Origin: Trichosphaerium sp. ATCC 40318
Taxonomy: Eukaryota > Protista > Tubulinea
NCBI GenBank assembly: GCA_038496445.1
Contig: JALMLS010000612.1
Location: 496,001 to 560,000 of the forward strand
Direction: 5' to 3'
Length of the DNA stretch: 64,000 bases
Part shown: one piece after another, positions 32,309 through 52,186 of the stretch
How positions within the stretch are numbered: the first letter of the stretch is position 1
How the letters are laid out: each line of letters starts with the position of its first letter
Made by a program: the position numbers and the translations under genes
The notes under the pieces: generated by a model
Told to the model about the DNA's origin: nothing
Database searches by the model: none
What the model saw: the letters and a program-made list of their open reading frames with translations, nothing else

Positions 32309-34464
32309 TTAATGCTCCTCTTCTTCCTCATCTTTAAGATGCCATGTTTTCTCTTGCCATTTCTCCCAAATCCATTCACCATCATCGTACTTAATCAAGT
32401 AAGAATCTTCATCCTTTCTATACTTTATAATCACTCCCTTATACCATGTATTGTATAACGGCCAATATAATCGCACAGATTGACCTACGCAAAAAAAAAT
32501 AAGTAAGACGAGTAAACAATCAATCGCTACGCGTACCTAAAGTTACACCATGCTCTTCAGGTACTTGATCTGTAGGTGCTCCGTCATCTTTAACACCTTC
32601 ATCAGAGTAGTACTAAACAATTAATAAGCTCAAACAGCGCATTTTGTAAATACTTGCCTGTGGATCGTAGTACGGATCAATTAATTCTGGATATTGCTCT
32701 TGGTAGACACATCTGTCACACTAGACACTTTTTAGATACAACGCCGAAAGTGATGTAATACCTTGCAAACAAAGAAATATTTATCAGATAGGCACTCTCG
32801 CCTATCTTTTAAGCCTGTAGAGATATCAATGTATGATATACACACCTCTGCATCCTTTAAAACAGAAAACAATTAGTAATGCCTAGATACAACAGGAGGA
32901 GTTAACGCACTTTTGCAATATCGTATACACTTGTAAACTCCATAAAAGGACTTAACTGTGTTTTACAGCGACCAAAAGTAGCATTAGGCCAACAAGAGTG
33001 ATTAAAAAATGAAGCTCTAGGGTAGACCTAAAGAAAAAAATGAGAAAACTAAACATGGTTTTACGTAAGAAAAATGAGCTTACACCATATCCTAGACATT
33101 CACCAGTATCGCCCCAGATACCAAACATATTAACACGATGTTGACAATACATTTCCAAGAGATCATCTTCATCCATTCTAGCTTTCTACAAAAGAAATAA
33201 ACTAAGCTTTTGTTGTAACTGTAGTTGCATCCAGCAATTTTTACCTCAGGCATGAGCCAATTGGCTACTCTTACTATAGACATTAATGTCTGTAAAGTGT
33301 CTGGATCATAACATTCTTTATTAGATATCAAGTGAGCATATTGTTCAGTAAATGAGTCGACCTACAATTTGTTACTAAAAAACAACAAAATACATAAGGG
33401 ATCCAGCACATAATTTCAACAACCCAATAACACGTACTTCTATACTAGGATCTGCCTCTTTTTTATCACGAGCAATTTGACGCTTATTCATAGCTCTAAT
33501 AAGAAGTCTGACATCTGTCAATAAGTCATCGCAAAGGCCATAATATTCCTTAACCCATTCAGTGTCAAGTGCAGATAACGCTGCCAATTCATATCCCTCG
33601 TGCTCATCTTTATCTAACTCTTTACATTTACCACAACAATACCAAAGCTGACGTGAAGCAGATTGTATAGGGTCGATTGGCAACTCAGCCCAAACATCAA
33701 CTGGTTTTTCAATTACTGCAGGCTCAACGCCTTCAGGTAGATCTGGAAGGTCCCTTTTTGGCGGTTGAGATTGCTTAGCCTTTCCTTTACCCTTCACAGT
33801 TGATGGTGCTAGCATTTATAAGCATATTAGGCGTTTTAACGCTTTCTATTTTTTGTTTGTTTGGTATCTGTTTAAACTGGTACCTTTCATTGACGACGCA
33901 GTACTTTCAGTGTTATAACCATCGTTTAGACCTTCTGGGTCGTCGCCAAATTTTCGAAAGCAGTGAGCGCATACCTAAATTACTAATGTTACTATTATAG
34001 GCGTAATAAGGTTGCGGAGCAAGGTAATTTACTACGTACGTTGTTCTTTCTTGGTTCGTACGGTACAAAGACAAAAGGCTCGCATAGCATGACAATTTCG
34101 CCGCTTTTGGCGTCACCACTGCCTGTCATACCGTATCCTGGCTTTATTAGATCACAATGTAAAAATAATAAAAAGAAATCGTTCGGTCATTGTTGTGGCT
34201 ACTATTTCAATTTTTAAAGTAGATTGAGTGGCGATTAAGCGTAAAAGAAAATATTTTGTCACCTTTGTGCTCCATTTGCGTTAATTCTAGATCCCACTTG
34301 CTCTGCTTGAACCACGTTTGTAATCTAGACTCAACAGTCTCTCTGTACGCTTTTTAGCACAAATTGTACTGTAAAAACGCGCGGGCTGTCACAAAAGTAA
34401 CGCACCGTCCTTCAAGCCGAGATTCCGGAAAGGCTGGTGCCGCATTTGACTCAGAGGTTGTCAT
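32309..34464 (-). CDS. SET and MYND domain lysine methyltransferase (SMYD family), multi-exon
   Basis: ASFFNHSCWPNA, ISYID, YFFVCKCDRC post-SET motifs; split MYND cysteines. Confidence 0.88.
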
Positions 34465-46039: not shown

Positions 46040-46218
46040 ATATAACAGACTTTTTTACCCAACACTCTATATAATAGTTTACAGTGTATAACCATTTACT
46101 TGTATCTCTAGTCAAATACTTTGCCATTACTAAATTTTTTGTCACAATTTTCTTATTGTCCAGATACTTATTTTGGATTACACGTCCTCTTTGGTGTTAA
46201 GCTTAACATGTGTTTTGT

Positions 46219-46299
46219 TTATTTTGAGCTACTCCATACACGAAATGGTTTTAGATTTCTTTGATTATTGTTTGTTGGTAAATTAAAGGTGTCACCTTG
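46219..46299 (-). pseudogene. Orphaned 3' end of the minus-strand F-box-PPP copy
   Basis: The reverse complement matches 50768-50841 (KPFRVWS..K* end). Confidence 0.75.
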
Positions 46300-46721
46300 A
46301 ATTGGCAGCGTTATCTGCACTGACACTGAATGGGTTAAGGAATATTATGGCCTTTGCGATATTTTGACAGATATTCTGAGCTATGAATAAGCGTCAAATT
46401 GCTCGTGATAAAAAAGAGGCAGATCCTAGTATAGAAGTACGTGTTATTGGGTTGTTGAAATTATGTTTGTTTTGTGTTTTGTTCTTTTACCAAATTGTAG
46501 GTCGACTCATTTTGAACAATATGCTCACTTGATATCTAATAAAGAATGTTATGATAGACACTTTACAGACATTGTTGTCTACAGTTACAGTAGCCAATTG
46601 GCTATGCCTGAGGTAAAAATTGACGTGGCAACTAATTATGCCAACAAAAGCTAACTGTCTTTCTTTTGTAGAAACTAGAATGGATGAAGATGATCTCTTG
46701 GAAATGTATTGTCAACATCGT
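46297..46721 (+). pseudogene. Inverted, frameshifted fragment of the SET-MYND gene (source about 33137-33592)
   Basis: Near-identity to the reverse complement of the source, introns included (e.g. gctatgaataagcgtcaaattgctcgtgataaaaaagaggcagatcctagtatagaagtacg), with small indels. Confidence 0.92.
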
Positions 46722-47808
46722 TTAAAAGAAACCCATCAACTTATATGAAAAACCTACAACAAACATACCTGCTCTACGCAAACAACCCCAACCACTTCTT
46801 TCGTCATAATTTGTCCACAAAAAGTCGTTTATTGGTCCATCATGCGGTACATCATCATCTCGAGAAAGTGCTCTTATATCACCTAATGTATCTGTAGAAG
46901 GACTAAGGCCGCCATGAACGCAAAAATACGTATCACCAATGATAGCTACTGTACAAAACGGTTATTGAATTCAAACAACAATAAAGTCCAAGTACCCAGA
47001 GGAAGAGCATTGAATGCCGAGCAAAACATCTTCCATATTGATTTATCATATAGTTTGGTACATGTATCATAGAGGCCGTACACCTGTGTTACCTGCAACG
47101 ATTCATGACTGCCTCGTAGCATATGTATTTGATGAGGATACTTGAGCTTCAAAGCAAATAGTAGTGTTATCACACGGATTGAAAAATGACCTCTTGACAT
47201 AAATGTAAGGAAGGTAATTGTAGATAAACAACCATTGGTGAACACAAAAGAGCATGTGTTTTTACATTACCTGTTGACATAGTTCCCCAAGAAAAGAAAG
47301 TTGACATCTGGAGGCACACCCTCTATTTTAAATATCTCGAGCAAGTCTGACAAATGTCCTTGAATATTACCAACAACAGAGATGGGTGCATCAATAGTGA
47401 GAATATTATCTTCTTTTAAGAATACTTTCCTTGCTTGTGTTGCAATGATGACAAGTGTTTCAACTCGAATTGGTTTGTGACACATGCAAGCATGTATAGC
47501 TGATGTCAAGATGGAGTCCATACAGTAAGATAACATAAACCTAAATCGTGGCTTATAGTTCATCTACGATGCCGTTAACAGTAAAAGAGAACTCATGCTT
47601 AAGCATACACTTGTGACGTTTGTTTCACTGTCATCAATTGGAGTAAGATCGTATTTTTAAGCATAAACGTCCAAAATCGATTGTTACTCACCACGTTATG
47701 CATATAAACGCATGAAGCGCTCAAACAGCATAAATGAGTGTAATTTAAATTAGTTGTTATTTGAAGAAACGTTTCCAACGGCAGATACTGTAAATGTGGA
47801 GTTGTCAT
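46722..47808 (-). pseudogene. F-box + PPP-phosphatase-like gene, 3'-disrupted copy
   Basis: F-box [12 protein letters not shown]..; PPP-like [22 protein letters not shown]; broken within an intron by the SET-MYND fragment. Confidence 0.85.
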
Positions 47809-48289
47809 GATGCCTTCGACCCAGAAATAGATCACTGACATTGAACAGTTTAAGCCACCATTGAGTCAAACTTTTTCGACCAAGCAAACAGTGTCAATTT
47901 GTTCTATTTGGTTTCATTGTTTTTGTGAAGGTACGAAAGGACCTTTGAATCTTGGAAGATGTAAAACGATCATAGATCCTTTTGTTAGTCACCAAGAATT
48001 GAAATATGACTAGTATGAGTTGTACTTGATGATGTTTCAACCATTGAGACAGAAAAGATTCACTAAAACGATTTACTACAAGCACCAATGTACCTTGTGG
48101 TCCTCTTTCAGATTGGGTAGTTGTCCTACATGTGGCACTATATATGACGAAAATTTAAAACCACAGGAATGGCCCAGACATTTGCCTCTAGACTAATCAC
48201 GTGTACACCTTTGAGCAAAATAAGGAACATTTTGAGAATGTTAAGGTATGCTTGGTTTTTGTTGAACGTCAGTTTTCTATGGGCGGATC

Positions 48290-50841
48290 ATGACAGCACA
48301 TTTACAGTATCTACCATTGGAAACGTTACTTCAAATAACAACTAATTTAAATTACACTCATTTATGCTGTTTGAGCGCTTCATGTGTTTATATGCATAAC
48401 ATGGTGAGTAACAATAGATTCTGGACGTTTATGCTCAAAAATACGGCTCTTAAGCAGATTGATAACTCCAAAACATACAATATATCTCTGTCGACTGAAT
48501 AAGCTACAAGTCCTTTGTGAGCATTTAAACTGTCTCAATAGTTATTAGAGTGTGGTGTGATGCGTTACAGAAAGAGTAAAGCTCATATTGTTAGCACAGT
48601 GGGTGGTAGATTTTCTGTATTTCTATGAAAAAACTCATTTTTTTGTATGCCAAACTTACTACCTCACGTGATTAATTAATGTCGCATTTTATAAGTAATT
48701 ATTAATCTGTGCACCTTTGAATACTTATGGTATGTTTAAAAGGGATTTAAACAAAAAATACAATTTAACTGCTTGAAAAGTATGTATACGCATTAGTAAT
48801 GCTGTTAAGTTAATTTGTGTTGATTTATAAAACTATAGCAATTCAAACTTTTTAAAACAACACACAATTAGTGCGAATAGAATAGCTTGATATTCTTGTG
48901 GCTTAAACCACCATTTTGGTGTTTTTTATTTTCTTAGCACCACGCTTGTAACCCTAATTTGAATTAGGGCTGTGACACTAACCCTATTTTGTAATTAGGG
49001 TTTATTCTGCAATGACATCTTACAACAACCTACACATGCTGATCTAACAACAAAAGTATCTGTAACCCATAAGACAAGAATTTAGATCTAAACAGTTGTG
49101 TTTGAAGCTGCACATACAGTACGTTTTATATGAAACCCTACTTTGAATTAGGGTTAGACACTGTTTGGTGATTAGGGTTAGGGTTTATCCATTGTGACAT
49201 CCGTGTGATCCATAGTTGCACTCAGTTTGATACCAACAAAAGACTTATGTATTGTATTTATTGTACTGTTTTTGAGTTTGTTGGTACCCTTTGTACATGG
49301 GTACTTGATGAATGTGGACATTAGCAATGTCAGAAAATAAACTTCAGCTTTCTGTGAACACAAAAAAAGGCTGCGGATGCTGCTCAAATTTGAGTAAAAA
49401 ATTGTCCAAAATTCCACCCGCTTGTACTCCTTGTGTGTAGTCGCTTGTGTGTGGAGAGTGGATATATGTATGAAATGACTGGCTAACTATTTGTGGTGTT
49501 ATTCAGTCGATAGAGATATGTGTACGCTAGTAGAAACATGTTTGTAACTGTTTTTTGAGAACATCTTTCATTACTCATACTAAGACCAACACGTGTCGCC
49601 ATTAACAGACTTGTAGATGAATCCAAGATTTAGGTTTATGTTATCTTACTGTATGGACTCCATCTTGACATCAGTGATACATGCTTGCATGTGTCACAAA
49701 CCAATTCGAATTGAAACACTTGTCATCATTGCAACACAAGCAAGAAAAATATTCTTAAAAGAAGATAATATTCTCGCTATTGATGCACCCATCTCTGTTG
49801 TTGGTAATATTCAAGGACATTTGTCAGACTTGCTTGAGATATTTAAAATAGAGGGTATGCCTCCAGATGTCAACTTTCTTTTCTTGGGAAACTATGTCAA
49901 CAGGTAATGTAAAAACACGTGCTCTTTTGTTCATCAATGGTTCTTCATCTACGATTCTCTTACATTTATGTCAAGAGGTCAATTTTCAATCCGTGTGATA
50001 ACACTACTATTTGCTTTGAAGCTCAAGTATCCTTATCAAATACATATGCTACGAGGGAATCATGAATCATATTTAACACAACGTTATGGCTTTAAAAACG
50101 AGTGTATCAAGAAATATGATGAATCAATCTGCAATTTGTTTTGTTCTGCATTCAATGCTCTTCCTCTGGGTACTTGACTTTATTGTTGTTTGAATTCAAT
50201 AACCCCTTTGTACAGTAGGTATCGTTGGTGATACGTATTTTTGTGTTCATGGTAGCCTTAGTCCTTCTGTGGATACACTAGATGATATAAGAGCACTTCC
50301 TCGAGATGATGATGTTCCATATGATGGACCAATTTGTGACTTATTGTGGAGCCATTATTGCGAAGATACACTTGGCTGGAAATTGCCAAATAGAAGTAGT
50401 GAGTTTTCTTTATCATTCTTTATGACGGCTAATTGTTACCCAGCAGAATTCACATTTGGAGAAGATATCACAGAGCAGTTTCTAAACAGAAATAACTTAC
50501 AGGGCATAATTAGATCACACGATTTGGTGATGGAAGGATATGTAAATGTCCATAACAACAAACTACATCACATATATAGTGCTTCGAGCTATTGCAATAG
50601 GTGTGATAACAATGGTACGAGAATTTGACACAAAACAAACTTGTTTTTCTAATTACATACCTGTCTCTATTTAGGTGCTGTTCTTCGTATCATGGAAGAC
50701 TTGAGTGTACATCCACAATATCATAAAATAACTAAAGAACAACGGATATCATTTCAGAAAGTTGTAAGCAAGGTAGACACCAAGAATAGTCCAACAAACA
50801 AACATCCAAAACCATTTCGTGTATGGAGTAGATCAAAATAA
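48290..50841 (+). CDS. F-box + PP2A/PP4-like pseudophosphatase, exon 1 interrupted by a TIR element
   Basis: F-box exon; GNIQG, GNYVNRG, RGNHE, HGSLSP, DLLWSH, IRSHD, SASSYC; removing the 48485-49516 insertion and one TA restores ...KTYNIC|MNPRF. Confidence 0.8.
48483..49518. mobile_element. Non-autonomous TIR DNA transposon (about 1.03 kb) with TA TSD
   Basis: Inverted repeats atatctctgtcgactgaataa (48482-48502) and ttattcagtcgatagagatat (49499-49519); absent from the paralogous copy; no recognisable transposase. Confidence 0.85.
48949..49186. repeat. Telomere-like AACCCTA..TTAGGG palindromic motifs inside the transposon
   Basis: Three hairpins (48949-48969, 48979-49002, 49133-49155) plus TTAGGGTTAGGG at 49172-49183. 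Confidence 0.8.
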
Positions 50842-52186
50842 ATACCTACGAAAACCACAACACCAAAATAGTTTGCGCTCCATAATTGCGTAGGGTGAGA
50901 CCTTAAGCAAGGTCACAAAAGCACAAGTAAACTAGAGCCAGATTATGTAAGCACTCCACTTTTAAAACAAAATTATTTTGATGTTGAAAATAGTTTTTTA
51001 TGATTGACGCTTGAGTAAATAGTAGCCATACATACTGTGAATAATATATAGAGAGTATGAAACATTCACCAACAGTGATGTAGCCTACAATGACTCTAAA
51101 AAATAGTTTAATTTTGTGACTTTTTAAGCATTGTTTAGCTAAGTTATACTTATTGCACACATTATCAATTATGTTTTCATCACTTTGAGTAGGTGTCAAT
51201 GGTAGTATTTAATAGCCTCAAAGCATGTTATTGAAAAGTAAACGCACAATAAAGTGCGTCAAATGTGGGAGTTTGTTGAATGATATTTGATGAAACAAAA
51301 GGTTTACTATTCTACACTGATGTTATATGTTATGTTCTACACTTTTCTTCATTAGAAAATGAGTATATGGCATAGTGGTGCCACTATGATCAATTGTAAA
51401 AATACACATGCCAATAGCGTTTGCACCAAAAGTACTCACTTACTTTTTTTTTTTTCCCAAAGTTATCACACAATCAATTTTACATCTCAGTTATTGCCAC
51501 CGATATACTCACATGCGTTGCAAGTGATGTATTTTAGCTGGCACGTTTATGTGTTGTTAAAAATGGCCCAGTTTTCTACAGCTGGAATTTTTCGTAAAAC
51601 CAATATTAAAGGCTAGGGCCAAAACGGTCCAAACCGTGACTATGTAGAAACAGAAGTATATGATCTGTTTATATAGTTTAGAGAATATCGATGGCATTGC
51701 CTGGCATTATACCTTTTTCTTGCCTTTTTGTTTGAAACAGCGTTTTATGCTTGGAAACGCATATTCTACGCACGAATAACGCTTGTATAGTATTGTTCTT
51801 TGATTTTAAAGAGCAATTAACTTTTTTAGCCACTAAACGCTGTAAAACACTTATAACTTCAGTTCCTACATATTTGGAACAATTAAAAGGCTGTGTAATG
51901 TGCAGGCATCATGAAACCGTGTTCAAGGAGTTTATGTTGCTACTTTCCTTTTAAGGCAAAAAGTTTTTGCTTTTAAGTAAGTACTTTTTTCCGTGCTTAC
52001 AACGTAATTTTATGCTCTCACACTCCTCTACCTTGTTTAACAGCATCTTTTAAAGCCGATAAGCATGTGTGGAATGCTTACGTAATCTGGCTCTACAAAG
52101 GCAACAATCATTTACATCAAAATTTATTCTATTTTTGATAAATTTCATAAAACCCTTTTGTACAGTGTGCAGGCTATGAGGTTAAT

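Follow-up and report, generated by a model that had tools for sequence, protein, structure and literature searches.

In a window of 64,000 nucleotides of the Trichosphaerium sp. ATCC 40318 genome (assembly GCA_038496445.1, contig JALMLS010000612.1, positions 496,001 to 560,000 of the forward strand; "window" means this whole stretch, and coordinates count from its first letter), the DNA is eukaryotic, with about 37% G+C and short introns. At about 46.2-50.8 kb, it holds two head-to-head genes, called here the plus and minus copies after their strands, each encoding an F-box followed by a degenerate phosphatase domain of the PPP family (Table 1). Self-comparison of the window showed that both genes are tied by five inverted-repeat blocks of 76-96% identity, the arms diverging by 4-24% in a mosaic pattern, and the starts lie 481 bp apart; the divergent inverted pair described in a first-pass annotation of this DNA was thus borne out. 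All searches were run exon by exon, and the joined spliced models were used for alignment, for the ratios of nonsynonymous to synonymous substitution rates (dN/dS), and for the trees.

The F-box exons of both copies exceed the gathering cut-off of the Pfam F-box-like family PF12937 (24.3 bits), with 30.1 bits in the plus copy and 26.7 bits in the minus copy, and the plus-copy exon is also over the cut-off of PF00646 (22.4 vs. 20.5 bits). The Metallophos family PF00149 of Pfam is matched by exon 2 of both copies and by PPP exon 3 of the plus copy, and PPP exon 1 on its own has no Pfam match in either of them. Exon-by-exon phmmer searches against solved structures found exons 1-4 of the plus copy collinear with PPP catalytic subunits, corresponding to residues 31-271 of PP2A C-alpha, with PP1 as the best match of exon 1, calcineurin as that of exon 2, and PP2A C-alpha among the top matches of exons 3 and 4. 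These results bear out the earlier claim that both copies carry an F-box and a PPP domain. Asp85 is the residue bridging the two catalytic metals in these enzymes, and in PP2A C-alpha numbering the plus copy carries D57N and H59Q (GNIQG), besides D85N and D88N (GNYVNRG), while it retains R89, N117, H118, H167, and H241, and its WSDP motif has become WSHY. The minus copy has the same GNIQG and GNYVNRG, and additionally N117S (RGSHES) and WTNY. All the motifs that had been reported, GNIQG and GNYVNRG in both copies and WSHY in the plus copy, read as stated, and neither copy has intact GDxHG, GDxVDRG, and GNHE metal-binding and catalytic motifs.

Besides these replacements, each assembled copy carries a structural lesion that blocks its full product. 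In the plus copy, the homology to the minus copy ends at 48445 and restarts at 49620, and in between lies an element (48482-49521) that recurs in the genome, at 98% identity on contig C614, at 97% on contig C3, and in more than 20 partial copies. Without the element, the plus copy reads ...TAC AAT|GTGTAC and the minus copy ...TCA CAA|GTGTAT, and therefore the insertion point falls precisely between the final F-box codon and the splice donor GTGTAC. It is a young transposon displacing the first splice donor of the plus copy, and it is this insertion, not an ordinary intron, that parts the F-box from PPP exon 1, a point missed in the first-pass annotation. As assembled, the F-box frame enters the element and meets a stop at 48500-48502, six codons on; we found no GT/AG pair that would connect the full F-box exon, in frame, with the usual acceptor at 49616, and the only in-frame donor for this acceptor is a cryptic GTGAGT at 48404 that would delete the last F-box helix. 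The element also contains several internal CCCTAA/TTAGGG-like palindromes, and pieces of its 1,040 bp are present in RNA-like contigs of the public run X1, described below.

The minus copy has the normal structure as far as the donor that follows ...RRAG (46769|46768), where its homology is lost, so that its earlier annotated end at 46722 does not hold. What follows is a captured fragment of 428 bp whose source, at 33130-33591, comprises three 3' exon pieces of an unrelated minus-strand gene at 33-34 kb. In the region of this fragment, tblastn found no exon 5 of the minus copy, and a decayed exon 5 suspected by eye was rejected, given that tblastn gave it no support. The assembled minus copy would be without His241 and the C-terminal third of the fold, and we infer that both lesions leave null alleles or very young pseudogenes. 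A well-covered X1 contig of 1,551 nt overlaps the captured fragment and is probably derived from the source gene.

The pair belongs to a larger family. The genome, with 642 contigs and 70,278,838 bases, was searched in six frames with the F-box exon and PPP exon 1, which gave at least eight family loci, that is, the two described here and one each on contigs C177, C144, C109, C170, C25, and C127. At eight family loci, PPP exon 1 follows the F-box exon at a distance of 55-85 nt. Six loci are uninterrupted, with exon models of 361-394 residues, and therefore intact members do exist in this genome. The minus copy and most intact members have a short GT..AG intron of 45-60 nt at the same place between the F-box exon and PPP exon 1 (modelled in C177, C109, C25, and C127, set by eye in C144, and with an ambiguous junction in C170). 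All share an N-terminal F-box, a linker of about 20 residues, and a PPP-fold domain of about 300 residues, with protein identities of 31-83%; the family is old, and its architecture has been kept. C170, C25, and C127 have no intron between PPP exons 2 and 3, C127 being also without the last intron, and introns were therefore lost inside the family.

Across the family, the catalytic positions have been lost copy by copy. Asp85 is gone in all eight copies (Asn in seven and Ala in one), as is Asp88, whereas position 57 is Asn, Ser, or Asp; position 59 is Gln, His, or Asn; position 117 is Asn, Ser, Arg, or Ile; position 118 is His or Arg; and position 167 is His, Asn, or Tyr. Retained more often are Arg89 (Arg or Lys in five of the eight) and His118 (six of the eight), besides Arg214 and His241, both present in at least six of the seven full-length models. 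CNRCDN and RGNHES are PP2A-type motifs, and the TPDYFL tail occurs in none of the modelled members, which have a Lys-rich tail instead. Such a copy-by-copy loss is the signature of a fold retained for non-catalytic use, and judging from these residues the members are predicted to be inactive.

The intact paralogues have dN/dS values of 0.20-0.37 by the Nei-Gojobori method, with bootstrap upper limits of at most 0.53, and thus not near 1 (0.24 at a dS of 0.37 for C177/C144, and 0.37 for C170/C25). By domain, the values for intact members are 0.12-0.47 (F-box) and 0.25-0.38 (PPP part); between C177 and C144 the exons are 75-90% identical vs. 49-73% for the introns. Given these low ratios in each domain and exons better conserved than introns, both domains have been kept by purifying selection in the family, and it is this combination of a selected fold with lost catalytic residues that makes its members putative pseudophosphatases. 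In the pair at the locus, dN/dS is 0.51 (0.36-0.71), with introns 83-94% and exons 71-91% identical, the introns being as conserved as the exons, which fits a recent duplication or gene conversion with relaxed constraint. The selected F-box pseudophosphatase proposed in the first-pass annotation therefore holds for the family, with its six intact paralogues, low dN/dS in both domains, better conserved exons, and Asp85 lost throughout, but not for the two assembled copies, considering the transposon at the donor of one, the missing exon 5 and half of exon 6 of the other, and the higher ratio between them.

Run X1 is the sole public run with parts of the stretch, of an unrecorded type, and its contigs were compared with the window over 46400-51000. 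An X1 contig of 799 nt follows the minus copy from 47211 to 46768 with identical exons, every difference lying inside a retained intron; at the exon-3 donor, it joins a sequence 98% like exon 4 of the plus copy, skips the 60-nt GT..AG intron, and runs through the last exon to the stop, with an in-frame 9-nt insertion, being thus spliced at the exon 3/4 and 4/5 junctions. There is no copy of that exon 4 elsewhere in the assembly, and therefore the source of the contig is an intact allele or copy missing from the assembly. The published draft of Trichosphaerium sp. ATCC 40318 (70.87 Mb, 710 scaffolds, 37.69% G+C, mean intron of 75 bp) was built on mixed long reads, with Redundans collapsing heterozygous regions to a single representative (PMC10521059). 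Since X1 holds this spliced contig, minus copy-like in exons 2-3 and complete through the stop, an intact minus copy-like allele probably survives on a haplotype removed from the assembly. A second X1 contig corresponds to a paralogue; it is spliced between exons 1 and 2 and reads GNYVNRGYFCVRVIA there, as C177 does.

Outside this genome, a word search with PPP exon 1, restricted by length and made without records close to this genome, gave no match. An exon-1 profile built on the eight copies and run against 1.84 billion representatives matched 7,681 PPP proteins, among which there was no family-level relative (the best reached 120 bits, and none had E <1e-30). Of 30 matches scanned with Pfam from the best 150 of the 7,681, only one has an F-box, an Acanthamoeba castellanii cluster (P0054) that includes the Neff protein ELR12561.1 / XP_004334574.1 (UniProt L8GK49), annotated as "Ser/Thr phosphatase family superfamily protein". 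In Pfam, it has F-box-like (2.9e-8) and Metallophos, and its motifs read GDLHG, GNWGDRG (D85N), RGKHE (N117K), and VSSGLSP (H167S). A Logan contig contains its full 493-residue open reading frame (ORF), collinear with the Neff genome minus seven introns, and therefore the F-box and the PPP domain of Acanthamoeba are on one spliced mRNA. The first-pass annotation knew of no characterised protein with this architecture, which is fair for the literature searched, where we found no paper on a fusion of an F-box with a dead PPP domain, but the Acanthamoeba protein is an existing database example. Of the observations that it named as refuting, the absence of an intact expressed member, a dN/dS of about 1, or an F-box exon not spliced to the PPP exons, none was made, with RNA proof of this splicing in Acanthamoeba only; in the present genome, the F-box/PPP junction is predicted from its conservation across the paralogues. 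Searches with the whole Acanthamoeba protein and with its residues 1-215 gave no further F-box members, the latter query (F-box plus linker) recovering only its own cluster, and a relative of this protein, P0161, probably 5'-truncated, has no F-box and reads GSLHG and GRYVNRG.

In a site-heterogeneous IQ-TREE analysis, the Acanthamoeba pair is sister to the Trichosphaerium family with a support of 86/77. A second tree with giant-virus PPPs added gave no resolution at this node, FastTree did not recover the grouping, and the Acanthamoeba and Trichosphaerium genes have no intron positions in common. The truncated C8m was left out of all trees, and rep_P0044, rep_P0032, and rep_P0068, with very long branches, out of the second one. 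It is possible that the Acanthamoeba and Trichosphaerium fusions share a common origin. The Trichosphaerium genes form a clade with 100/100 support that lies outside the PP2A and PP4 groups in the sample (which had no PP6 by name), and the original "PP2A/PP4-like" label fits only loosely, in agreement with the CNRCDN and RGNHES motifs but not with the position in the tree or the tail, given the lack of TPDYFL. Because the F-box is a common domain among the putative viral transfers in this genome (PMC10521059), a giant-virus origin was also considered; it was rejected, as the twelve giant-virus PPP loci compared have canonical catalytic residues and no F-box, and group in a clade of their own.

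Our reading, which we regard as probable, is that the locus holds head-to-head paralogues of a family of F-box plus degenerate-PPP proteins that would be non-catalytic SCF receptors, both copies here being disrupted. The F-box would dock the protein on Skp1/cullin, and the dead PPP domain would be the substrate-binding module of the SCF ligase, holding phosphoproteins in a pocket formed by the retained Arg89, His118, and Arg214 or, alternatively, binding proteins that normally bind PPP catalytic subunits. The fact that Arg89, His118, Arg214, and His241 are kept more often than the Asp ligands fits a phosphate-holding pocket and thus a natural substrate trap. Several observations weigh against this proposal. 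The C170 and C25 members retain GDIHG, His167, and His241; no X1 contig covers any F-box exon or F-box/PPP junction, with a depth of 0 over 47632-48555; and the minus copy-like X1 contigs retain two introns, which, together with the unrecorded run type, means that some X1 material may be unspliced RNA or DNA. In addition, heterozygosity or, less likely, misassembly may underlie the transposon and the 428-bp replacement, and the dN/dS of the pair is still below 1, so that part of its history was constrained.

Other explanations must be weighed against the same evidence. Both assembled copies might be functional, selected pseudophosphatases if the transposon were removed within a long first intron and the minus copy simply made a shorter product, which would agree with the open PPP exons and good splice sites of the plus copy, the dN/dS of the pair, and the existence of a minus copy-like transcript; we consider this improbable, since the full F-box exon has no in-frame route to the acceptor at 49616 and the cryptic donor costs the last F-box helix, while the minus copy is without His241 and the C-terminal third, and the introns of the pair are as conserved as its exons. 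It is also unlikely, if slightly less so, that the dead PPP domain serves as a decoy binding PP2A-type partners, such as the scaffold, alpha4/TIPRL-like regulators, toxins, or inhibitors, which would then be degraded by SCF. The fold and many surface motifs of PP2A-type subunits have been kept, as expected of a decoy, but the TPDYFL tail, which is needed for the methylation-dependent assembly of PP2A with its regulatory subunits, is missing from every member, and neither the PP2A nor the PP4 clade includes the family.

We give a low probability as well to the members being still, or differently, active phosphoesterases, with the F-box placing the enzyme on SCF or controlling its own turnover. 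It is true that C170 and C25 retain Asp57, His59, His167, and His241, that Asn is able to ligate metals, and that yeast Ppn2, a PPP-like protein classed as a pseudophosphatase, is nevertheless reported to be catalytically active in a paper on fungal pseudophosphatases (PMC13216928). However, the Asp85 change to Asn or Ala and the loss of Asp88 extend to all eight copies, and independent losses at positions 57, 59, 117, 118, and 167 (to Ser, Asn, Gln, Arg, Ile, and Tyr) are what is expected without selection on catalysis. Least probable of all, and very much so, is an artefact of assembly in the inverted pair or in its two lesions, despite the mixed-read, haplotype-reduced published assembly (PMC10521059) and an intact allele seen in RNA contigs only. 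The mosaic 4-24% differences between the arms, a transposon with clean inverted-repeat ends at a precise site, and a foreign fragment 87% identical to its source all argue for true sequence, whereas chimeric joins would be near-identical.

With respect to known systems, the proposed F-box/dead-PPP receptors have their closest counterpart in Acanthamoeba castellanii ELR12561.1, which likewise has an N-terminal F-box and then a PPP domain with Asp85 changed to Asn and further ligands lost, no TPDYFL, and a single spliced ORF, but differs in its linker of about 150 residues (about 20 in Trichosphaerium) and in the retained GDLHG and Asp88; its PPP part is 43-47% identical to PP2A/PP4. The canonical PP2A/PP4/PP6 catalytic subunits share with our family the fold, the motif order, RGNHES, and a YRCGN-like motif (CNRCDN here), and differ from the genes described here by the D57N, H59Q, D85N, and D88N replacements, the N-terminal F-box, and the missing TPDYFL. 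Like the SCF F-box receptors of the FBXW7 and Skp2 type, many of which read phospho-degrons, the family has an N-terminal F-box above the Pfam threshold plus a separate protein-binding domain, which here would be a dead PPP fold instead of WD40, LRR, or Kelch, and its binding to Skp1 is predicted from the F-box. The kinetoplastid PPP pseudophosphatases (kSTPs) also have a phosphatase fold with mutated catalytic residues and were proposed as natural substrate traps (PMC2994645), but carry no F-box. The nearest described link to the fusion is the pseudophosphatase STYX, which binds the F-box protein FBXW7 (PMC13216928); STYX, however, has a tyrosine-phosphatase fold and acts in trans on the F-box protein, whereas both modules are parts of a single chain here. 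According to a recent paper, the human PPP-like family has no reported pseudophosphatase (PMC13216928).

F-box receptors and pseudophosphatases are, of course, each well known. Should the dead PPP domain prove to read phosphoproteins, phospho-degrons would have a new type of reader, which would also be a natural substrate trap usable for finding PPP substrates; Acanthamoeba castellanii can be grown and manipulated in the laboratory, and therefore this idea is testable in that organism. The wider idea that these fusions are an ancient amoebozoan class of SCF receptors, common to Trichosphaerium (Tubulinea) and Acanthamoeba (Discosea), with a metal-free pocket reading phospho-degrons and thus a reader that descends from the very enzyme normally erasing the mark, is speculative and we hold it to be rather doubtful. 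The locus is, besides, a small case study in which both members of one inverted pair were damaged recently, one by a transposon at its splice donor and the other by a captured piece of another gene.

Table 1. Features of the F-box/PPP inverted pair in window coordinates, with the evidence for each.
Feature	Position	Strand	Evidence
Minus copy remnant, last ~27 codons (...KPFRVWSSSK)	46218..46299	-	77% DNA match to 50769-50842; tblastn
Foreign fragment in place of minus copy exon 5 and first half of last exon	46298..46725	.	inverted 87% duplicate of 33130-33591
Minus copy PPP exon 3, VHGGLSP and WTNY, ends ...RRAG, intact GTATGT donor	46769..46945	-	gene model; X1 contig spliced at exactly the 46769|46768 donor
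Minus copy PPP exon 2, RGSHES (N117S)	46996..47192	-	Pfam, gene model; covered by X1 contig
Minus copy PPP exon 1, GNIQG and GNYVN-R	47271..47563	-	reading frame, gene model, alignment
Minus copy first intron, 47 nt, phase 0, GTGTAT..TAG, between F-box exon and PPP exon 1	47564..47610	-	gene model
Minus copy F-box exon	47611..47808	-	Pfam F-box-like 4.7e-6; gene model
Spacer between divergent start codons, 481 bp	47809..48289	.	start-codon positions
Plus copy F-box exon up to insertion	48290..48481	+	Pfam F-box-like 4e-7
Non-autonomous DNA transposon, 1,040 bp, ~21-bp terminal inverted repeats	48482..49521	.	genome copies, boundaries, inverted repeats
Plus copy original first intron, severed from F-box exon	49522..49616	+	alignment of element-free plus copy to minus copy
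Plus copy PPP exon 1, GNIQG and GNYVN-R	49617..49903	+	reading frame, phmmer, gene model
Plus copy PPP exon 2, RGNHES	49976..50169	+	Pfam, phmmer, gene model
Plus copy PPP exon 3, VHGSLSP and WSHY	50219..50398	+	phmmer, gene model
Plus copy PPP exon 4, FTFGED and IRSHDL	50447..50614	+	phmmer, gene model; acceptor and donor match X1 contig joints
Plus copy last exon including stop, Lys-rich tail, no TPDYFL	50675..50841	+	gene model; preceding 60-nt GT..AG intron skipped in X1 contig

The likely start of the minus copy is the ATG at 47808, given that another in-frame ATG upstream, at 47841, is absent from the paralogues, and the spacer between both start codons (47809..48289) is presumably a shared promoter region. 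In other protist or metagenomic PPPs, replacements of Asp85/Asp88 were also seen without an F-box, in P0045, P0117, P0134, and P0161 (GNYINKG, GGYANSI, GNYVNHG, and GRYVNRG, respectively), P0134 having a signal-peptide-like start, and dead PPP domains seem to have arisen several times. The giant-virus PPPs (L046-L057) share a PFRFNIS motif just before the catalytic core that resembles the PRFRFMLS of the Trichosphaerium family, a likeness that may be due to chance. In Acanthamoeba, the F-box-PPP gene is directly downstream of a DUSP-UCH deubiquitinase gene, and in the RNA-derived Logan contig both ORFs are about 90 nt apart (L043 1-1407 and L045 1-1413).

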